Below are positions 5,199 through 31,599 of a DNA stretch of 64,000 bases, piece after piece. This DNA is from Octopus bimaculoides. Taxonomy: Eukaryota. The first letter of the stretch is position 1; every line of letters begins with the position of its first letter. The DNA lies in assembly GCF_001194135.2 (NCBI RefSeq), contig NC_068984.1:15435549-15499548 (forward strand). Direction: 5' to 3'. The notes beneath the pieces were generated by a model, which saw only the letters and a program-made list of their open reading frames with translations, was not told where the DNA came from and did no database searches. A program made the position numbers and the translations under genes.

Positions 5199-6675
5199 CT
5201 GAAATTAAATATAATGCTCAAATAATCCCTAGTATATGACAAATGGTACTGGTTAATTACCAGTTTAGAAAAACACTTCATAGCAATGCAACAAGAGGCT
5301 GGCAGCGAAACTACATAAAAACGGTATTTATCTTATTTTGAAAACTGAAAGGCTCAATGGATGAGAGTAAGTTACAGTTTTACAGCAATATAGTTTTCAT
5401 CCATTAGGATAGATTTAACACACTTTTGAAGTAGACAAATTAGCTTCATACTTGGGGTAAATGAATAAGACTTATGACAAATATATTTTAAGCTATCAAA
5501 TATGCACTGAAGCATCCAAATAAAGTACCTCATATATGAGAGGTCAGAGAACTTTAAAATAGTTTTTCATAGTAAATGCTTTAATGTATCCTAATATATT
5601 TCAACTAGTGATTGCTTTTCAACTAGCTTCTTAAAGCTATAAGCTATATATATGTATGGACATATAAAAATGCAAAAGTATTTTTTTTTTAAATAAAAGC
5701 TAGTATTGTTGTTCTGAAATGATGTTGAAAAGTATAATGAATACATTAAAGTCTTCGTTAAAAAATGTCTAAGGTGTGTATTTATCTGTACACATCACAG
5801 TATCTTCCAATATTATATGAAAATGTCAGATGTGTCCTTAAAGATTTTGACATATCTAATGAAACAAATTCTAATTTTCGTAGTTATATTCAGTTCAATG
5901 TATCAGATATGTTTCTAAGGCATGTAAAACATTAAGGACTGAAAATTTAATATATATATATATATATNNNNNNNNNNNNNNNNNNNNNNNNNNNNNNNNN
6001 NNNNNNNNNNNNNNNNNNNNNNNNNNNNNNNNNNNNNNNNNNNNNNNNNNNNNNNNNNNNNNNNNNNNNNNNNNNNNNNNNNNNNNNNNNNNNNNNNNNN
6101 NNNNNNNNNNNNNNNNNNNNNNNNNNNNNNNNNNNNNNNNNNNNNNNNNNNNNNNNNNNNNNNNNNNNNNNNNNNNNNNNNNNNNNNNNNNNNNNNNNNN
6201 NNNNNNNNNNNNNNNNNNNNNNNNNNNNNNNNNNNNNNNNNNNNNNNNNNNNNNNNNNNNNNNNNNNNNNNNNNNNNNNNNNNNNNNNNNNNNNNNNNNN
6301 NNNNNNNNNNNNNNNNNNNNNNNNNNNNNNNNNNNNNNNNNNNNNNNNNNNNNNNNNNNNNNNNNNNNNNNNNNNNNNNNNNNNNNNNNNNNNNNNNNNN
6401 NNNNNNNNNNNNNNNNNNNNNNNNNNNNNNNNNNNNNNNNNNNNNNNNNNNNNNNNNNNNNNNNNNNNNNNNNNNNNNNNNNNNAATTTCTTAAAATCAA
6501 AATAAATAATTAAATTTATCAAAAGGTGGGAGAATTTAATGAAACGCAAAAAAAAAATTTTATGAGACAAATTATGTTTTGGAGAAATTGAAAATAAAAA
6601 AGCTATCGCCCCAGTTGATTTAGAAACAAAAATATGCTAGATATTTCATACAGGGATATGAAATATATATATATG

Positions 6676-6706
<31 letters not shown>

Positions 6707-7789
6707 ATATCAAGAGTAGTCTAGTATACAACACTTGATTTTTAAGCTACACTGCAGACGTGGAAGACGCAAATTCTTGTTTCAAGTGTTTATAATAACA
6801 AAAAATAATATGGAAATATCTTCAGTATAATTTAAATCCACTGAACATCATTAAATTAATTAATTATTTAGTATTAAAACTAACATTATTTCAAGTTTAC
6901 ATCTTCTACAACACAGTTTAAATCTTAAAAAGGGCATTGAAAATATGAGAATTAAAAAAAAAATTTAAACCAACTACTCATTGATTGTAACTAAAATTTG
7001 CTAACTCTATCCAAACAATTACTATATTAAAAAATCAATTTGTCCTAATTGTATTTCAAGATAAAACTTAGCAATTATTACCCCATCTTTTAAATTAACA
7101 TTATGAAATCAAAATTTCACTAAGCTTTCGGTTATTGCCATTTATTTATATCTTTCCATTTATTTTATTTTAATGCATATTCAAAGAGTAATTAAATTTT
7201 TTTTTTTTTTATATTTTAAAAATTAATCCATAAAATACTAAAATATTAAATTTAAGTGTATTTTATAGGAATGTGTTTATAAGAAAGAATGAAAAATGCA
7301 TTCATTTTTCAGCAGTTTATATTTCAATTAAAAATAATAGAACTAATGCCTACAAAAGATGGCATGGTTCAAATATAGTTGATCTTCCAATAGTTAGAAG
7401 ACCAAGATAAAAACAATCATATATACAATAGGCATTAAAAAAAACTTAGGATAAATTTAAATCAAGAAAAATGTGTAATTTTGGATATCCCCCAACCCAA
7501 ATTTTTTAATTTTAAATTCTTATAGAAAGAATAAAAATGACAATAGAAGGGGAAATTAGATTAGAGATAAGGAAATGTTAAAGAGAGAAATAAAGAAAGT
7601 TGAATTTTAGGATTTAAGAAGAAAATTGGGGGAAGGGGTAAAAGAAACAAAGATAAACAAAAACATTAATACATTTTTGGGAAAAATTGGAGAAAAAAAA
7701 ATTCAGGAAAAAATGGAAAAAAAAAAAATGAAAAAAAAAAAAAGAAGTCAAATAATATCCTAGGCTAAACGTTACGAAATGATGAGTAC

Positions 7790-7886
7790 ATCGAGCCTGA
7801 AGAACGTCTCCCGGGTGATAGATCAGGTGACCATCTTCGTCGTCCTCGATGCAGGGCGCTCCAGCAATGAGTTCAGGGTGGTCCTG
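7790..7886 (-). CDS. CLK2: CLK2/Doa exon equivalent to vertebrate CLK exon 4
   Basis: acag|CAG GAC CAC ... = QDHPELIAGAPCIEDDEDGHLIYHPGDVLQAR+T, ending CGAT|gtactc. The DDxxGHLIY motif is diagnostic of the segment just before the CLK kinase domain. 97 nt (94 nt with the second NAGNAG acceptor). Confidence 0.95.
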
Positions 7887-8766
7887 CTGTTTGTGTCCGC
7901 CCCAACGTATTTCATCCCCCATTCATTCATTCAGCAGCACATATCATTCCCCAGCAAGCGAACGTATCAATCAGATGGGTGAGCAGCAGTAGAGTTCGTT
8001 CACATCCGTAGCACCGAATTTTTCAATGCCGCAACAGTGAGGCCAGCCAATTCAGGGTACATATGAGATAAACAAGGGTAGGCAAGGCCAAGTAAAGATA
8101 GTGTCACATACAAGCAACAAAAGATTTCAAAAAAACAAATGTATATAGATATATTTATATATATATTGAGAGATAAGAGACATGTAAGATCACTTTAAAG
8201 CCAAGTGGGGATCAATATTTTAAGAATTTAATTTTTCATGCAGTATCAATAAATTATTAAATTGCTTATCTATGGATTGTTTTTTACACCAAAAATATTT
8301 ATCATACAACTGAAATCAGCATAATTGAATAAAAGCTATTTACTAATATATTAATAAAGCATTTAAATATCATTATGACAAAATTAAAAGGCAAGAATGT
8401 ATATATATTTAACAAAACAATGTAGCAATAGAATTAAATATTACAAAATGAACTAAAGAAATAAAAATGAATATTTAATTGTATAGAATAGCTTCAAAGA
8501 ATACATATAAATATACAAAAAAAAGTTATATCAATGATGCAATTTTAGCAAAAAAAATAAATAAATAAAAATAACACTGACAATCATATTGAATTACAAG
8601 TTAAAAATATATATCTCAATGACATTAAATTTAGTTAAATCACAAATGCAGGGCTGTCAGGTATTTAAGGTTCAGTTCATGGTTGACCCTCAACATGGAA
8701 GTATTTATGGAAATACCTTCCCTAATGAAAAGAGAAATAAAAACATTCCAAAAAGACCTTGATTAC

Positions 8767-8768
<2 letters not shown>

Positions 8769-8845
<77 letters not shown>
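8769..8845. repeat. (AC)n microsatellite
   Basis: Direct reading. Confidence 0.95.
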
Positions 8846-8848
<3 letters not shown>

Positions 8849-9996
8849 AATAGCCAGTCCCTAACAGTATATTTAATTTTTAAAAAAAAAAGAAAGAAAA
8901 AAACCATGCTTTATATAATTCCAAGTATGCTCAAAATTTTGATCCTACACTAACTGCACCCTCATTCTTTCTCCCTCTCTCACATACACATATATATATA
9001 TAAGGAAAGAAATAGATGTAGTGAAGAATGAAGTGAAACATGCAGAAAAAAAGCATTACAATCTTGTTATAGAAAGTGTAAGTAAATTAAATTTTCATTT
9101 TCGTTGCATCAGCACAAACATGTGTAAATGATGGCCAGCCACAAATTTAGTTTACCAGCTTCCATGAGGATACAAAATAAAGAAGAAAAAGTGCAATATC
9201 AACTTATTTTGCCTATGTTTAACCATATGTTAACCACCAGTAACAGATATTATCAAAAGCACTTAAAACTAGAGATAAAAATTAGGGAAAAAGTATGGTA
9301 ACATAGTTTATGGAAGAAGCACAAGATAGAAGTAAAGTGTTGAAAATGTGAACTTTAGCTAAAAGGAAAACTAACATTGTGCCAAAAATAAAAATGATAT
9401 TGGAGATGGCGGGGAAACGAGTATTGTCTTAACTAAGGACCCAACTTTTATCAGAATGAATGATTCAGGGAAGCAATAATGGCTTTTTGTCTATATTAGC
9501 TATGTGTAGTTATGAGCAGTGTGTGCGTGTGTGTGTGTGCATGCGTGCTCGCGTTTGTAATTTACATTGGCACATATATATATGTACCATAAGTAAAAGG
9601 TGATTCTGAGAGTTCCCCCACCATTTTAAACCCCAAACTCAGTAATATACTCATAATTTCGAAATTATTTTTAGCTCTAGTGTAATGCTACCAATTTCAA
9701 GCTTGGCATTTTGTATTAAATTACTAGTAATACACACATGCACACATACACATAAACATACATTCAAATATGTCTAAACATATACACACTAAAGTATGTA
9801 TAAATGTATGTAGCCATATCCCCATAAGCGCGCGCACACATACACACACACAGCTGTAGAGTTTACAAGGTTCACTTTGTAACTATGTGATTTCAGGGTC
9901 TATCCCAATGCAAGGTATCTTGGCCTAGTATCAACAAAAGTACTGGTTGACCAATGTTTTGTAAATGTAATTGGTAGGGGGGAAACTATATGAAAG

Positions 9997-14915: not shown

Positions 14916-17899
14916 GACACATCTTTACATTTATATCTGTTTGTTTTTATATTGAGTTATAATAAAATCAATTAAACAAAAGAATTACTCAATACTTTTT
15001 GTACAGTATCAATTTATTTTACAAGAAGTAGAGTAACAGTGAATTCAAAGTTTCAATCTGGAAGCCTTCAAATAGATAGTCCAAACTAAGGCTGGCAGGC
15101 CAAAACATAGAAGTGATTGACACCTCTTTTCTTATAAAAGTGTTAAATATATACTTGAATTAAGAATGACAACTATATTTAAATGAATTTCTTTTTCAAT
15201 CATTCTAATATTTGTTACTCGAAGAAAGCGATAATAAACTTTAGAGTGTTTAACACCTTTCCACATAAATAAAAACAAAAACTAGTGATTAAGTTTACAT
15301 GGATGATATACATACTTAAATAATATCTGGGTGAATATTGCAGAGCAAGAAACAAATTCTAGCAAGTTGTGTTTATGATTCACTTTTGATTCCCAGTTTA
15401 ATGACATTTCATCTCACTTATGCCACTAATGCCCTTGGGAAAGGTATGTCACAATTTCTCTTTCTCTACACCCTTGAAATGTAGGGCAGCTGTGCCTAAT
15501 CAAAAAGAAACCAATATTTAAATAACCTGAACTGAAATTGAAACAATTCAAGCCATTTGATAAGTTAAAAACTATAATAAACAAGTCTAGCTATAGTTTA
15601 CGATAAAAACATTAGGCATAAGCTTGTGTAGTTAACTATCTTGGAGAAGATACTTTAATAGTAGCCAGACAGTAAAGGCCGTAATCTTATACTAGTGTTT
15701 ATAAGAATAGCAGAATAGCAGATAAGTGGAGCAAGTAGAAACATAGGAATTCAAGAAAATGAAGTTTCTAGGATAGATTGCAAAGTTGTAATCACAAGAA
15801 CTAACATCATCCACCAGCACCAAAACATCAATTAAATAAAATTTTAATATTTTGGTTTTACCAAAGTGTACTAGACTGAAATAAGTACCGGAATTTATAA
15901 TTGACTAAACTATGGAAGGCAGTAGTGCAATCTCTAAGACTGAAATTTGTAAATGAATACTTCTAAAAAGTTTTGTCCATACTTGGAAATTGTTATCAAT
16001 AACATTGTAACCTTAATGTAATCAACACTAATAACACCTCAAGTCCAACGTTAACACACTGAGAGAAAAGCAATAACCATAACAAAGAAAGTAATAATGA
16101 CCGTGACAATACTATTCCACTAAATTACTGAAAGTATAAACAAACATGAAAAAAGATTCCAAACTAAAATGTTTCAAGATCTCGTGAGAAAGCAAAGAAA
16201 GGTAGAACAACAAGATGCTGGTGACTCCAATCAAAACAGACAATTGCACACCTGCTTTCAAGAGGAGTAAAGAGGGAAAGTTAAGAGAAGAATTCGAAAA
16301 CAGTTTTAATTGAACTTTTTTCAATTTCAGAAGGGGTGGGAGGGGAAGGGGGGATATTATCGATTTCTTTTAATACGAAGGACTAATATTTTAAGGAATT
16401 AAGTGAAATCTAACTAGTATAAAGCAAACCTGATGAGATAACTATTCNNNNNNNNNNNNNNNNNNNNNNNNNNNNNNNNNNNNNNNNNNNNNNNNNNNNN
16501 NNNNNNNNNNNNNNNNNNNNNNNNNNNNNNNNNNNNNNNNNNNNNNNNNNNNNNNNNNNNNNNNNNNNNNNNNNNNNNNNNNNNNNNNNNNNNNNNNNNN
16601 NNNNNNNNNNNNNNNNNNNNNNNNNNNNNNNNNNNNNNNNNNNNNNNNNNNNNNNNNNNNNNNNAAATATGCTAACCCAACCATAGGCACCTCAGAAGCA
16701 CAATTGATTAAGAACATAGGAAAAGACAAATAATGTCCATGAAGCATCCCATATTATCTCACACACGCAAAACTTTTCTCTAGTGTTAAGACTATTGAAA
16801 TCTTTCTTCAAAATTAGTGATTGCCACACAACAAGGGAGCATCTTTTTTTTTTGTTTGCTTTTTAATTGCTCAAGTTATGTCAGCATGCTGTAAACTTGA
16901 TAAATAACCTAGTTTTATTATTTCTTTTTAATATGGACAGCTAATTAAAATATATTAGTAAATGAATTATTTTGCAGTTAATGAGCCAAAAACAATGTTA
17001 TGGACAATAATAACCAAATGCACAATCACTCATTCAAAAAAGCAAGACAAGTATTTTGCAACATTCCTTGTAAAGTTTCCTATGCATTGTATTCTTGCCA
17101 ATTAATGAAGTATTCCCTATTTTGGTAGATAACTCAGTCACAGTAGGCATCCCTAATTTGAACTTAGATGTTTCTTGGTTAATGTTATGGTTAGTTATGA
17201 AATTATACTTATAGCTGGGGACTTCGTACTTCCGTACGAGATTGTAGTTCATCTAGTGAAAGAGAAGCATTAAGATAATATACTTTTTCTTTTTTGTAAA
17301 CTATGTGCAAAAAGAAAAAATATTAATTTAAGCAACAAGGCATGAAAAAAAGCTAGCTAGCAATTATGAAAAATATGTGCAGAAAGCATAGCTAACAACA
17401 GTGAAAGATTAAAGCAGATATACAAATTTTTACAAAGCTAAAAATGGTAGAATGCAATGAAAATGTATACAGGTCTATATACATATATATATGTGGTCAA
17501 ATTATCCATCCCCCACCAAAAAATAAATAAATATAAAAAACATATAATAGTCGAAAATTAACAAATTACACTTTCAAATAATTTAATAGAAACTATCTTG
17601 ATTTATCAGAAATAAACTTGTAACTGTCATTGGGGCATGGAAATAGAAAAAGTTTTCAGTTGGAGGTAGGGGGTTATTGTCAGTTGAGAAGAAGGCAACC
17701 AGAACTTTTACATTCCCTTAGATACCATTTCAAAAATTTATCTAATATCACAGCTTATTCTAAGAAAGTTCATGAATCTAAAATATAGCAATGCACTCTT
17801 TTCAAACACACACACATGCAAACCACACACACACACACACAAACAGATCTTATAATTTTATTCAAAATTAAGTGAAACTTGAAAATATCCTATACCTAC

Positions 17900-20707: not shown

Positions 20708-22208
20708 ACTCCCACTACCATAGAATAAAGATGACATTGATGACTCCAAAATCAGCAGCTGCTAAAGGAAGTGAGAAAAGGCTGAAAAAACACTGGCATT
20801 CAAAATCCATAATCATTGCAACAAGAATTGTGTTGAATTTTTCACTGAAAATCAGAAATTTATCAAATTATTCAACTGAAACATCAAAAGTAAATATCAT
20901 TAATATTAAGTAGAGCAAAATAATATTACTATCATTCATGTTGATGCTGATTTCAATTGTAAGACATTTTAATAGCAATTCTTATTAATCAATGAACTGA
21001 GAAGAAAAAAACAGTCAGAAATCATTTTTTTTTTTTTTTATTATTGAAAATAGACAACAATTGAAACTAGAAAAGGATAGTTAATTAAGCTTAATATCAT
21101 ATTGAAAGGATAATTATCAATAACTGATGAAGAGAAAATTTAAAAAGCTGATCCCCATTTATCTGAGAAAGTGTCATTTGAAGTAAAGAGCAAGGAATAA
21201 TGTCTCTTGAATATATTTTTCCTTTTTTTTTTTTTTAATTTTAACTTTTTTTTATATATATTTTTTTAGTGAATATGAAGATGCATCTTACCTGCTCCCG
21301 TATATTTAGATAGTAGCAAGCAAACTTTAGCTTGCTACTATCATCATCCAGCACAGAGAAGTAAAAACAAAATGTTTATGACTTTTTTTTTTTTCTTTAA
21401 TTAAGACTCAAACCTAACAGACAAAGTCAGGTTTAAATCTTCGCATGCACCGCTTTCAATTAAATTAGGTAGATTCTCTTAGTCAGGCTAAATATATATA
21501 TATGTATATATATATTATAAATGTAGCCAGCATTGTAGAATTAAGAAACCAACAGAACTTTAAATCTAATAAAATAACACTAATTATTATTGTTCATTAT
21601 AAGAACTTTGCAATGGGGGTTTATATATAAAGGTTCTCAGAATACTTAGTGGGGTTGCTTACTTTATTAATTCTTACAGAATTGNNNNNNNNNNNNNNNN
21701 NNNNNNNNNNNNNNNNNNNNNNNNNNNNNNNNNNNNNNNNNNNNNNNNNNNNNNNNNNNNNNNNNNNNNNNNNNNNNNNNNNNNNNNNNNNNNNNNNNNN
21801 NNNNNNNNNNNNNNNNNNNNNNNNNNNNNNNNNNNNNNNNNNNNNNNNNNNNNNNNNNNNNNNNNNNNNNNNNNNNNNNNNNNNNNNNNNNNNNNNNNNN
21901 NNNNNNNNNNNNNNNNNNNNTTATTTTATGTTTTTTTTTCCTTTTGATTTTTTTTTTTTTTTTTTTTAAATCATTTTTAAGAATAAACTAGATTTTTAAT
22001 GAAATTAAAGTTGGAAATAGTAAATATCAGAAACATAGATTGCAGATGGGGACTGGACAGAGAATGAATATATAAAATAAATAGAAAAGGCTCTTAATAG
22101 TAAAGAGCCAAGGGAGCGGTTAGGGCCAAGGTAGAGTAAGATTTGTTTTCCTGATCAATGTCGATTACCTATAATAAATAATTGAAAATACCCAATAAGT
22201 CTACTCAC

Positions 22209-25807: not shown

Positions 25808-28800
25808 CTTGTGGACTTCGAGTACCACTACTACTAACAGTTCCTGTATATTTAGTGAAAGATCAATTTACGCTAGCAAATTAACATTAAAAAAAATTAT
25901 GGTGGCTGAAGTAATGACAATTTAGGTATTGTTTTACCAACAAATTAAAATTTTAATTTTAAAAAATTATTAAAAACCAGCTAAATTGCGGTCGAATTAG
26001 AAGAGGTAAGACTATCTCCCTTCAAAACAGTGAAGTAGCATATTCAAGGGAGATAACCTGAAAGCTATTTGAGGAGACTTTTGAATAGAAAATTTTATCA
26101 AATTGCAGTGTTTAGAGCCAATGCTGAAACATTGCATATATATATTCTAAGAGTAGTAACCACTTATTTAACAATTAAGTTTTAGACTTGGATAATCACC
26201 AATTAAAAGTAAACCCATAGGCAGCTTGTATATCATCATTTAGTCCTCTTTCCATGCTGGCATAGCTAGGACATTTTGACAGGAACTGGGAAATTATGCC
26301 AAGCTCTACTGTCTGCTTTGGTGTGGTTTCTTCGGTTGGATGCCCTTTCTAACAACAACCACTTTACAAAATGTACTGGGTGTTTTCTTTTTTTTTTTTT
26401 CGTGACACTAGCAGCAGTGAGGTCACCAGGTAACTTGAGACAAGACCCCCTCCTTAGTGGGGAGTAGTATGAAGGAGGTGGCTTTGTGCCAGGTAATGAA
26501 AAGTTAGAGTATGAACAGAATGACAAAAACAGAAGATATATGGCTACCTTAGCCAGAGGGAGGGGGAAGAAGAGAGAGATTAAGTAGGTGAAAAAACACT
26601 TGGAGAAAATTATCCAACTATACAGATTGTTCCTGCAAGACCATCAACCAAATCATGAAAGATGCTTCCATGCATTACAGACCAGAAGCCTCCCAAAGTA
26701 CAGATGGTTTTATTGGTTTCTTAACCAACAAGGATGACTCTATGCAATCACTTGACCTACAAGAAATAATCAAACTGCCTTCAAATCTCATCCTATCATT
26801 TTAAAATAAGAAAGAAACATTGAATAGACTCCTAACTACATGGACAAGATAGCCTTGGCTGAAATACCTTTTATCGTAGGCTTGCTTGAAAGAAAACAAA
26901 GCCTAGCCCCAAACCACCATAACCTATTGGTATACAACAAGGGTGTCTAACCACTACTTGGTGAAATGCACAGTATGGTCTCCCACAAAGCAAAGGTATG
27001 GTACAGGTGGAACAGTAGGGCTAAAGATCAAACTAAATTCTTTGATTGATTACTAATGTTCCATAGGTCTGCTCCAGAGATGATCTGAGGTTAAGTAACA
27101 ACAATACTTTCACAAGTTTCAGAAAAGTTATGGAAAACAACTTCCATCAAGAGGTAATTTAGTTTACAAGTTCCAACCAAAAAAATATTTATGACAACAT
27201 AAAATACAAACTTAACTGTACAACTAAAATAACTTTTCAAACTTAAAACCACTTCAAACACAAACCAACATTATTACACTTAACCGAAATAATATTCAGC
27301 CTCAAGCATCTAAGCATTTATAGCAACAGAGCAAATTATGATAATTATATTAATTATCAATGAGAAGCATACATTTAAAATGTGTGTTGCTCATACCAAC
27401 ATACAAGGTATATAACATAATAACATTCTTGACTGGTAAAATCATCTCATACCAAAATTGCCAAACTCCCAGAATTTGGAAACTGGGGAAAAATATGGTT
27501 CTAAAACCTAAAAAAAAATTAAATCAAGGCATCTTCATCAAGACTTTTTAAGTACACTCTAAACAAAGGAATTTTTTTTAAAAATAAAAATAAAAAAAAC
27601 TCGGCTTACACATTCCCTTTTTCTATTCACAATATGGATTTAGTCACTACATTATCACCACACTACTAACTATCGACAAAAAACATGAAACTTAAAAGCA
27701 ACAAGTTAACATTAGCAAACGTTTTGACTGTTTCCTGCCCTCACTTATAAAGAAAATACTAAATATCTCCTTAAAACAACACGAAGAACAGGCTAGTTAA
27801 TTATTTAATGAGTTGCCAAGTGTATAGCATGTTCAGAATCTGTTATTTTTCAATATATACATGCGAAAGTGAGAAAGAAATGAAGAGGGTGGTCTTGGGA
27901 TGTGCTAGAAACAACAGCCAATTCTCCCTTAAATCACTGAAAATATTTACTTTTTTTCTTTCTTTTTACCGAAAAGGCTTCTAAGTGCAAAAATTGGCCA
28001 AAATCGNNNNNNNNNNNNNNNNNNNNNNNNNNNNNNNNNNNNNNNNNNNNNNNNNNNNNNNNNNNNNNNNNNNNNNNNNNNNNNNNNNNNNNNNNNNNNN
28101 NNNNNNNNNNNNNNNNNNNNNNNNNNNNNNNNNNNNNNNNNNNNNNNNNNNNNNNNNNNNNNNNNNNNNNNNNNNNNNNNNNNNNNNNNNNNNNNNNNNN
28201 NNNNNNNNNNNNNNNNNNNNNNNNNNNNNNNNNNNNNNNNNNNNNNNNNNNNNNNNNNNNNNNNNNNNNNNNNNNNNNNNNNNNNNNNNNNNNNNNNNNN
28301 NNNNNNNNNNNNNNNNNNNNNNNNNNNNNNNNNNNNNNNNNNNNNNNNNNNNNNNNNNNNNNNNNNNNNNNNNNNNNNNNNNNNATGAATTTTCCAAAAC
28401 TCCTTATATCAACCCTTCACAAAAATTCATTCCAACAAATCCCTACATATTCTGAATCTACAGCATCTCAGCGGTATTTGTTGAAAATTTCGTTAAAAAA
28501 ATATCCATTTTTTCTAGAAGTTATGAAGCAACAAAATGGGGGAGGGGGTACATATCTGTAGTTATGCCAATTTGTTTTAATTAGAATAAATTAACTCCCT
28601 TCGACAATTAGGGGAGGCGCTAGCCCTTAACACTACGCACTTGAGTACATATGTATAAGTATTTCAAGTTGACCAGTCAAATTCCTGTGGAATTACACCG
28701 TGCCGTTTTAAAGTGAAGACACGTAGATCAGTATAGACTTGGATGTACAAAATGATGGAATGGAAGGTCACAGCTAAAACGGTTTGATTAGGCTTGCTTG

Positions 28801-31599
28801 ATCAGTGATAACAGTAATAAATGTCGAAGAGAAGCAATCTCCACTTCTTATCTTCTAAATTAAATGTGGAGCCTTTGTATGAATTGCTGTTAAAATTCAA
28901 AATTACAATTTTAAATATATTGCTTTAATAACATTATAGCGAGTCTCAAGGTACACAACTCACTTCAAGTGCTTTCCCCTGATACACGAAAACTAAATTA
29001 GAACAATGATTCAAAGTGAGGAGTGATCTTCAGTTCTTTTCAAATTAACAGAATGTTTATATTAACAAATAGAAATACAGCTNNNNNNNNNNNNNNNNNN
29101 NNNNNNNNNNNNNNNNNNNNNNNNNNNNNNNNNNNNNNNNNNNNNNNNNNNNNNNNNNNNNNNNNNNNNNNNNNNNNNNNNNNNNNNNNNNNNNNNNNNN
29201 NNNNNNNNNNNNNNNNNNNNNNNNNNNNNNNNNNNNNNNNNNNNNNNNNNNNNNNNNNNNNNNNNNNNNNNNNNNNNNNNNNNNNNNNNNNNNNNNNNNN
29301 NNNNNNNNNNNNNNNNNNNNNNNNNNNNNNNNNNNNNNNNNNNNNNNNNNNNNNNNNNNNNNNNNNNNNNNNNNNNNNNNNNNNNNNNNNNNNNNNNNNN
29401 NNNNNNNNNNNNNNNNNNNNNNNNNNNNNNNNNNNNNNNNNNNNNNNNNNNNNNNNNNNNNNNNNNNNNNNNNNNNNNNNNNNNNNNNNNNNNNNNNNNN
29501 NNNNNNNNNNNNNNNNNNNNNNNNNNNNNNNNNNNNNNNNNNNNNNNNNNNNNNNNNNNNNNNNNNNNNNNNNNNNNNNNNNNNNNNNNNNNNNNNNNNN
29601 NNNNNNNNNNNNNNNNNNNNNNNNNNNNNNNNNAATTTTACTTAAATCTGTGTTTAACTTTGGGGGAGGGGAGGGTTAAAAAAAATTCCAGGTTTGAGAT
29701 TTGGCCGAAATATTAAAAAGGTTGAAAACGACTGCCCTAGACGTTGTTCAGACAAATTTTCAAGGAAAAAAGCTTTTGAATTTTTCAGTAGAATTATAAG
29801 AACATGGAGGTACATAATTTTATACTAAGTTGGTAATGCCGTTAAACAAATCTTTAAATCACATACATAGCACAAGAACCAGTGTATGTACACACACACA
29901 CTCTCTCACTCTCTCTAATGGAAGCCAGTTACAGAAAATTTTATATTGAAGACAATTCCAAAAGACCTTTTAAAGAATCTATTGCTATTCAAAGCAGAAA
30001 CATTTCACGGCACCAAAGAAAAAGAAAACAGCATCTCTATAGTGCAATTGTGACAGTGATTATGAAGATTGTAAAAGATTCACAAGCGATGGTAAGATTT
30101 GGCACAGTGTGATGGGACGAAGTTCACTGCTAAACATTTTTGGTATTTTGAAGGGTTACAACACTGTCGGATGATTTTAAAAGATAGTGAAGATTCCTAC
30201 TGTTGGAAAATAGAAATGTCAAGTAAGAACCATTGACATATTCAAAAAACAGCTTAATTATATACAGAATTAATGGTAATTGATAGCACAATCAAAAGCA
30301 TCATCAAACAATAAATAATAGAGATAAGTAATTGTTAGATAAAGAGAACACTGAATATGTACAGCCAGTGAACTGAGGTTTGCATTTAATTCTAGGGTGC
30401 AGTGTCCTTGGATTTAGCAGTCCTCGGAAATGATTATCTTAAAAATATGGCAGAAAATGAAGCAAAATATAAGCACAATTGAAACAAATTGACCCCAAAA
30501 AAAAAAGCTGAGAAGTGTTTACTTCATTTACTTTCAAATTTTAGCCTAGAAGAGAGGACAGTAGGGTGGATATTCCAAAGAATTAGTTCTAGATATCTGA
30601 AGAGGAAGGATTGGGTGACATGTTTGGCAAATGATTCCAGAGACAATGAGAGGAAGCAAAAAAACAAGGTAAGACAGGAAGACTTGTAATTAAATTTAAA
30701 ACAAGGGGGAAGATATAACTGCATTTTGCAAGTGGTTGTAGGGTACTTACAAACAAAACTGTATTCTTAGTTTTATTGTTATATTTTACTTTAAAAATAG
30801 ACTTATTATTTCTAGTCAAGTGTGTACTTGACTTTATCATCTGATGAACTGGAACAAGATGTTTAACCGAATTTTAGCCAATCAGTACTTCAGGTCTAAT
30901 GCATGTAATGGTGAACTAATACACAGAAAGTATTCTTACATCATCATCGTTTAACGTCCGCTTTCCATGCTAGCATGGGTTGGACAGTCGATAGACAAAA
31001 TTTTTGTTTGACTCATCCATTTATTATACCAGTGGTACAGATTACTTTATCTGCAATAAGACTAATCGGATATAACATACATGACACTGACATGGCTGTG
31101 TAGTATAAAAAGTTTGCTTTTCAATCACATGGTTTCTGGTTCAGCCCTATTGCATGGCACCTTGGGCAAGTGTCTTCTAATATAGTCATGGACCAAGCAA
31201 AGTTTTGTGAGAGGATTTGGTAGACAGAAACTGAAAAGAAATCTGCTATATATATGTGTGAGCAAATAAATATATATATATATATCATTTAACATCCTCT
31301 TTCCATGCTGGTGTGGGTTGCAAGGTTGTGGTAACAAGGCTGGGAGCCATACCAGGTTCCAATGTCTGCTTCAGCATGATTTCTACTGCTGGATGCCCAT
31401 CCCAATGCCAACAAGTTTACAGAGGGTACTGGTTGCTTCTTACATGACACCATCACCAAGTAACTTGCAATAAGTAAACATATATATATCAGAAAAAGAA
31501 AATGGAGATTGGCAAAATAATCATCATGCCTTATATGTGTGTGTGTGTGTGTGCGCGCGTGCGTGTGTATGGCGACAGTCACATGAGAGTCACAGAGAG

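Follow-up and report, generated by a model that had tools for sequence, protein, structure and literature searches.

Exon 4 of a CLK (LAMMER/Doa-type) kinase gene, carried on the minus strand of the window (the whole 64-kb stretch of DNA analysed here), is preceded by 304 nt of intron that contain not a single AG dinucleotide. Judging from comparison with related sequences and from the analogy with the human genes, we think it likely that this stretch is the AG-exclusion zone of an exon-4 3' splice site whose branch point lies far away, some 200-300 nt upstream. The distant-branch-point arrangement has been known for the same exon in human since 2010 (PMC2991248). What is new is the arrangement in invertebrates, together with a conserved branch-site block and a transcript that retains the intron.

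Background

The phosphorylation state of SR splicing factors is governed by CLK kinases, whose own level is, in mammals, self-controlled by way of exon 4 and the two introns that flank it, both of them slow to splice (PMC11346455): CLK1 and CLK4 have detained introns 3 and 4 and an autoregulated inclusion of exon 4 (PMC3187705; PMC11571805; PMC11346455), and exon 4 with its proximal introns is conserved and is sufficient for intron retention that responds to CLK inhibitors (Ninomiya et al., 2011; PMC3187705). SRSF3, acting from within intron 3, is a repressor of the exon-4 3' splice site in human cells, where the exon has TRA2 proteins as its activators (PMC11571805). A 2024 review tied the extreme conservation of this region among vertebrates to endothermy and asked whether the mechanism is ancient (PMC11346455).

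AG-exclusion zones were defined by Gooding et al. (2006), who described distant branch points from which the first downstream AG is used as the splice site (PMC1431707). Such zones reach at least 100 nt in 838 of 67,334 human introns and at least 150 nt in 165 of them, and the exons that follow long AG-free zones are enriched for alternative splicing (PMC1431707). The classical cases are alpha-tropomyosin exon 3, PTBP1 exon 11 (381 nt), PTBP2, GABBR1 exon 23 and HTR4 (PMC1431707). Corvelo et al. (2010) mapped the branch points of two CLK genes (PMC2991248): in human CLK1, exon 4 is 91 nt long and follows a zone of 235 nt with branches at -224 (atctgAaaa) and -229 (atcttAtct), and in human CLK3, exon 4 is 97 nt long and follows a zone of 207 nt with a mapped branch at -196 (tcttgAcgt). 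In both genes the pyrimidine tracts downstream of the branch are interrupted by purines, and stronger candidates in the middle of the zone are not those used (PMC2991248).

The kinase gene, exon 4 and its acceptor

The exons and other features of the gene that bear on the argument are listed in Table 1. The joined peptide of exons 4 and 5 finds its best PDB matches in human CLK2, CLK1 and CLK3 (E 1e-13 to 4e-11), and the 97-nt exon is, on the evidence of the peptide it encodes, the homologue of human CLK exon 4. It codes for the EDDxxGHL(I/V)xxxGDxLxxR segment, which lies immediately N-terminal to the glycine loop of the kinase. Since the length of the exon is 1 mod 3, skipping it would shift the frame upstream of the kinase domain and yield a truncated protein; exon-4 skipping was not seen among the sequences recovered. 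The intron 5' of exon 4 measures about 14.3 kb, provided that every exon was spotted. The window contains ten assembly gaps totalling 2075 N, three of them within the introns that flank exon 4, and the 14-kb upstream intron could hence conceal sequence, even a small exon.

Table 1. Positions, in the whole 64-kb stretch, of the features discussed in the text.
Feature	Position	Strand	Remarks
RS-rich exon (exon 3)	22455-22209	-	donor gtgagt; phase 0 at its end
Conserved distal block	8056..8134	-	T-rich stretch, TATGTGACAC, branch site, purine-interrupted pyrimidine tract TTGGCCTTGCCTACCCTTGTTTATCTC, CATATGTACC
AG-exclusion zone (likely), 304 nt	7889..8192	-	zero AG; ends at the exon-4 acceptor
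Alternative branch-site candidates at the zone's edge	8167..8192	-	ATCTTAC (A 8185, -299), CTCTTAT (A 8174, -288)
Best candidate distant branch site, ATCTTTAC	8092..8099	-	candidate branch A 8093 (-207)
Proximal spacer	7889..8050	-	49% GC, 8 CpG; 3' end purine- and G-rich; AG-free
Proximal spacer motifs	G-runs 7952-7949, 7920-7916, 7903-7900; (TGAA)3 7933-7922; TGATTGATAC 7973-7964	-	
Tandem acceptor AGcAG (NAGNAG), acAGcAG	7884..7888	-	first AG past the zone 7888-7887; second AG 7885-7884
Exon 4, 97 nt	7790..7886	-	peptide QDHPELIAGAPCIEDDEDGHLIYHPGDVLQAR with CLK motif EDDEDGHLIY; donor GAT|GTACTC
Weak donor GAT|GTACTC and conserved downstream-intron block CATTTCGTAACGTTTAGCCTAGGAT	7757..7789	-	35/39 identical to L006
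Exon 5	5198-5132	-	peptide (Y)EIIQTLGEGTFGKCVEVKDVAR; carries LGEGTFGK
Assembly gaps (N)	5968-6484, 16448-16664, 21685-21920, 28007-28384, 29083-29633, plus smaller runs		

The acceptor is a tandem one, with a second AG 3 nt downstream of the first; both are in frame, and the exon begins CAG GAC in phase 0. Splicing at the second AG would remove one glutamine and keep the frame. The acceptor is almost certainly genuine, and poor scores from splice-site predictors are to be expected for it because it has no pyrimidine tract. We also considered a U12-type intron and rejected it: the upstream donor is gtgagt, and no TCCTTAAC-like box was seen near the acceptor on inspection by eye.

The AG-free zone and its composition

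The minus-strand AGs that bound the zone are at 8194-8193 and 7888-7887. The zone contains 73 A and 63 G, from which 15.1 AG would be expected and none is observed, while the reverse dinucleotide GA occurs 18 times; among 20,000 mononucleotide shuffles of the zone, none had fewer than 4 AG. When all dinucleotide-free runs of the whole window, on both strands, are normalised by dinucleotide frequency, the zone ranks first. Next in rank come (TA)n and (CA)n repeats; the zone itself is complex sequence. Upstream of it the spacing of AGs is normal (8194, 8266, 8271, 8311, 8337, 8344; gaps of 3-70 nt). The AG-free zone is real and far beyond chance.

An earlier note on this DNA, made from the letters of the window, had described the zone as free of AG over its whole length, as lacking a local polypyrimidine tract, as having pyrimidine-rich sequence farther upstream and as GC- and CpG-rich in its proximal part, and the counts agree with it on each point. 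The final 40 nt of the intron are 28% pyrimidine and end in ...GGGGCGGACACAAAC; in the same gene, the corresponding figure is 70% for the exon-3 acceptor, which is AG-free for 40 nt, and 55% for that of exon 5, AG-free for 16 nt. Pyrimidines make up at least 80% of the 20-nt windows that begin at -201..-196 and at -303..-301, and a T-rich stretch lies within the zone at about -250..-225. The proximal 162 nt (8050-7889) are 49% GC with 8 CpG, against 30% GC and no CpG in the distal 142 nt (8192-8051). CpG observed/expected is 0.65 in the zone and 0.30 elsewhere in the window, and a CpG-free stretch of 1070 nt (8030-9103) starts inside the zone and extends upstream of it.

Comparison lineages

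A search of metagenome contigs with the degenerate pattern DGHLIYxxGDxLQ found the homologous exon, introns included, at 11 genomic loci, which fall into four groups. The first consists of L001, L002, L004, L005, L007, L008, L009 and L011, which are near-identical to each other and whose kinase exons look insect-like; the second is L006, a marine metagenome contig of 12.4 kb; the third is L010; and the fourth is L003, which has only 109 nt upstream of the motif. The exon measures 91, 94 and 79 nt in the groups with enough upstream sequence, 91 nt in the cDNA contig L012 described below and 97 nt in the window, in every case 1 mod 3. At the homologous exon, L006 has an AG-free zone of 283 nt, L010 one of 215 nt and the L001 group one of 337-342 nt, where 10-15 AG would be expected; each of these zones is the longest AG-free run of its own contig and ends at a phase-0 AG.

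A protein-database search added four short CLK fragments, whose contigs include L012, L013 and L014. L012 (Logan SRR7949663) is a cDNA contig in which exons 4, 5 and 6 are joined and the upstream intron is retained over its last 243 nt; the 241 available intron bases hold no AG, with 12.3 expected, and 17 GA. Being a single contig, L012 could also represent a splicing intermediate of the ordinary sort. No information on introns comes from L014, which is fully spliced. In L013 (TARA metagenome scaffold, 330-480), the EDDEDGHLIY segment is preceded by a conventional intron about 60 nt long that has several AGs, and no intron follows it, the segment being fused to the kinase exons, so that the cassette layout is lost; with this counter-example, the arrangement is not universal. 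A local pyrimidine tract of fair quality, tcttgccctcctgcag, with 55% pyrimidine over the last 40 nt, is present in the L001 group, whose zone could not be aligned with that of the window by local alignment; for these two reasons, the arrangement could be partly convergent.

The AG-free zones of the window, L006, L010 and L001 also have a base composition of their own, with a GC content 6-12 percentage points above that of their contigs and a CpG observed/expected of 0.57-0.80, compared with 0.30-0.48 for the contigs. The proximal sequence is nonetheless unconserved.

Candidate branch sites and the conserved distal block

The best candidate for a distant branch site, ATCTTTAC, was among the top-scoring candidates before any comparison between lineages was made, and the next 30 nt are 73% pyrimidine. 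The branch-site-like string ATCTT[T/G]AC is invariant, its A standing at -240 in L006, at -155 in L010 and at -224 in L012. The alternative candidates at the 5' edge of the zone are followed by a 75%-pyrimidine stretch and show no conservation in the relatives. In sequence they are similar to atcttAtct, the branch site mapped in human CLK1, and that site, too, is found at the 5' edge of its zone (PMC2991248). The branch adenosine used here is a candidate assignment, most likely A8093 of ATCTTTAC, with A8185 or A8174 as the alternatives.

The candidate site sits within a conserved distal block that, when 700 nt of the upstream intron were compared with L006 by BLAST, was the sole significant match (E 3e-6). 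Smith-Waterman alignment of the AG-free zones, scored against dinucleotide shuffles, gave z 10.7 with L006 and 4.2 with L010, both on 8134-8056, and L012 has the block as well according to the alignment. The last element of the block has the consensus CA(T/C)AT(A)TGT.CCC. No base pairs were found in a consensus structure of the block, and beyond it the upstream intron does not align with L006.

On the other side of exon 4, the non-consensus donor core GAT|GTACT is common to the window, L006, L010 and L003, and intron conservation resumes there, so that exon 4 is flanked by conserved intron both upstream and downstream. Counted together with the donor, the downstream intron's opening 33 nt, GTACTCATCATTTCGTAACGTTTAGCCTAGGAT (7757-7789, minus strand), match L006 9095-9130 at 35 of 39 positions. 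This 33-nt block is better conserved with L006 than is the N-terminal half of the exon-4 coding sequence. Just 3' of exon 4, positions 7520-7761 of the minus strand contain an AG-free run of 239 nt, the second-longest on that strand, with a very T-rich tract, tttttttttttttcattttttttttttccatttttt..., that begins about 45 nt past the donor; L006 is T-rich there too. Next to the weak donor, this tract might serve as a U-rich platform for binding, or it may be plain low-complexity sequence.

The earlier note had taken the whole zone for a constrained splicing-control element and had suggested that some of its motifs might have counterparts in the introns of other CLK genes. The first of these proposals holds for the distal block and fails for the GC-rich proximal part, for which z ranges from -0.7 to +2.0; between lineages, the proximal spacer has no significant similarity except for a short stretch shared by L006 and L012. 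The second fares no better for (TGAA)3 and GGGGGATGAA, which are unique to the window, while TGATTGA(T) does recur, weakly, when compared with shuffles (P 0.04 in L006, P 0.02 in L003; overall P 0.02-0.11). The k-mers common to all four genomic lineages are not significant against dinucleotide shuffles, a test in which the shared GCGGCA.TGAAA and GCCATTGCC, which had made a first impression, fell as well. Taken as a whole, the comparison shows that constraint falls on the absence of AG and on the short branch-site and pyrimidine block, not on the sequence of the spacer.

Likeness to human CLK genes and other distant-branch-point exons

With human CLK1 and CLK3 the window shares the gene family and the exon itself, which is 91 or 97 nt long and encodes EDDxEGHL(I/V)... 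just before the kinase domain. The comparison with the human introns covers the mapped 9-mers and the primer ends (PMC2991248), and within that scope the likeness extends to the intron: the zones are of similar size (304 nt here, against 235 nt in human CLK1 and 207 nt in human CLK3), a TCTTnAY-type site with a purine-interrupted tract lies far from the exon (L010 has tcttgAcct), and stronger-looking candidates are present in the middle of the zone in the window as in human CLK1 and CLK3. The intron ends are pyrimidine-poor in both, ...GGGGGGCGGTGCATG in human CLK3, as implied by the reverse primer (PMC2991248), and ...GGGGCGGACACAAAC in the window. The differences are that the branch point here is predicted, that the candidate with the best conservation sits within the zone, 97 nt from its 5' edge, and not at the edge, that the zone here is longer than in CLK1 and CLK3, and that the intron here is about 14 kb.

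GGGGCGG occurs in the last 20 nt of the window's intron (7897-7903), and the primer-implied CLK3 sequence ...GGGGGGCGGTGCATG stands at the same place (PMC2991248). L012 has CGGCGGG at the same place and the L001 group GGCGGAC at about -45; these strings are too short for homology.

Mammalian CLK1 and CLK4 offer a further likeness. Here too we find a small frame-shifting exon, conserved proximal intron on both sides and two weak splice sites, and in L012 a transcript of a relative that keeps the upstream intron while the downstream introns are spliced. Unlike in mammalian CLK1 and CLK4, conservation comes in short blocks, of about 80 nt upstream and about 35 nt downstream, and retention is seen in L012 for the upstream intron only, whereas introns 3 and 4 are both detained in mammals.

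In the classical cases of distant branch points, as here, the zone is well over 150 nt long, the branch site (in the window a candidate) and the pyrimidine tract lie toward its 5' part, the frequency of AG is normal upstream, and there is room for regulatory elements between the branch site and the exon. Whereas those cases mostly involve PTB on pyrimidine-rich spacer elements, the spacer here is purine- and G-rich and the gene is that of an SR-protein kinase.

Proposed mechanism

We propose that U2 snRNP would recognise a branch site some 200-300 nt upstream of exon 4, that the purine-interrupted pyrimidine tract would adjoin this site and not the exon, and that the 3' splice site would be whichever AG comes first downstream of the branch point, in keeping with the scanning rule (PMC1431707). 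Any AG that arose between the branch site and the exon would then be a premature acceptor and would be purged by selection, which would account for 18 GA and no AG in a zone whose primary sequence can otherwise drift freely. The spacer of about 160 nt, GC-, G- and GAA-rich and unstructured, would be a probable landing pad for regulators of the SR/hnRNP type. Together with the weak donor GAT|GTACT, it would make the inclusion of the exon, or the removal of the flanking introns, dependent on SR-protein phosphorylation, a dependence that by analogy with mammals would be one on CLK activity itself. That the exon is regulated here, and which proteins bind, we infer.

The idea of a distant branch point, which the earlier note had put forward, now finds support in the zones that recur at the homologous exon, in the conserved distal block and in the branch points mapped in human CLK1 and CLK3 (PMC2991248). 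RNA structure that bridges the branch site and the acceptor was considered and rejected: folding of the window sequence gave z +0.8 and +0.6 against shuffles, and for the spacers between branch and AG in four lineages z was +0.34, +1.89, +1.95 and +0.53, these spacers being if anything less structured than shuffled sequence.

Alternative explanations

The branch point in use might instead lie mid-zone or not far from the exon, at CTGATTGAT (A 7971/7967, -85/-81), at TGCTCAC (A 7980, -94) or at a non-canonical A close to the exon, with the distal block serving as an intronic regulator site, for example for a pyrimidine-tract-binding repressor. On motif score alone the candidates at -94, -85 and -81 equal the distal one; TGATTGA is also found in L006 (-170) and, by reading, in L003 (about 30 nt from the likely acceptor); and human MBNL1 exon 9 and the HTR4 exons use both distal and proximal branch points (PMC2991248). 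A branch at -85, however, would account for about 85 nt of AG exclusion and not for 304, nor for the 215-342 nt of the relatives. The mid-zone candidates have no good pyrimidine tract downstream, the last 60 nt being 20-45% pyrimidine, the recurrence of TGATTGA is weak against shuffles, as given above, and in human CLK1 and CLK3, where stronger mid-zone candidates exist, the mapped branches are at the 5' end of the zone (PMC2991248). With this evidence on its two sides, we judge a mid-zone or proximal branch point unlikely.

Drosophila Doa has several alternative promoters, and the GC/CpG-rich segment could be an internal promoter or an alternative first exon from which translation would start at the ATG at 7922 (MGDEIRWGGHKQ|QDHPE...), giving a CLK without the RS-rich N-terminus. 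That ATG is in frame with no stop ahead of the exon, the CpG ratio of the zone exceeds that of the rest of the window, and in-frame ATGs with no later stop occur within the last 6-65 intron nt in the window, L006, L010 and L012 (232-264). The context of the ATG at 7922 is poor, however, with a T at -3 and two out-of-frame ATGs directly upstream, and the L001 group has no such in-frame ATG; because the sequence is TG-rich, ATGs are frequent and these are likely there by chance. Stops stand in all three frames of the zone, which also disposes of a coding extension of exon 4 into it. An internal promoter would leave the missing AGs unexplained and, being compatible with a distant branch point, would not replace it; we give this possibility little credence, although a kinase that lacks the RS-rich N-terminus might in principle be translated from a transcript that retains the intron. 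Scarcely credible is the proposal that the zone has nothing to do with splicing and arose from its composition, or represents a repeat, part of a transposon or a structured non-coding RNA. Simple repeats elsewhere in the window are indeed matched by a short (TA)n-like piece around 8166-8139, but the remainder of the zone is unique within it, and composition is contradicted by the shuffles and by the window-wide ranking. Rfam gave no relevant match, either in a relaxed scan of 6500-9500 or at gathering thresholds over the whole window, and no tRNAs were found. The recurrence of the AG-free property at the same exon in independent lineages effectively refutes this explanation.

Evolutionary implications

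The proposed distant branch point upstream of exon 4 belongs to what we call the cassette: a frame-shifting exon whose donor is weak and of the GAT|GTACT type, a distant branch site of the TCTTnAY type and an AG-exclusion zone of 200-340 nt. The arrangement is seen in the species of the window, in three to four further invertebrate lineages, of which one looks insect-like, and in human CLK1 and CLK3, and this distribution suggests a bilaterian origin of the CLK exon-4 switch. That the cassette is ancestral to Bilateria, and not an innovation of vertebrates or of endotherms, is a proposition for which we see the balance as about even. If it is true, the cassette would be among the oldest conserved intronic splicing architectures, and the self-regulation of CLK by delayed splicing of exon 4 would be older than the control of body temperature. 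Its recurrence in invertebrates, together with the retained-intron transcript, makes the question whether the mechanism is ancient (PMC11346455) one that can be tested in cold-blooded animals.
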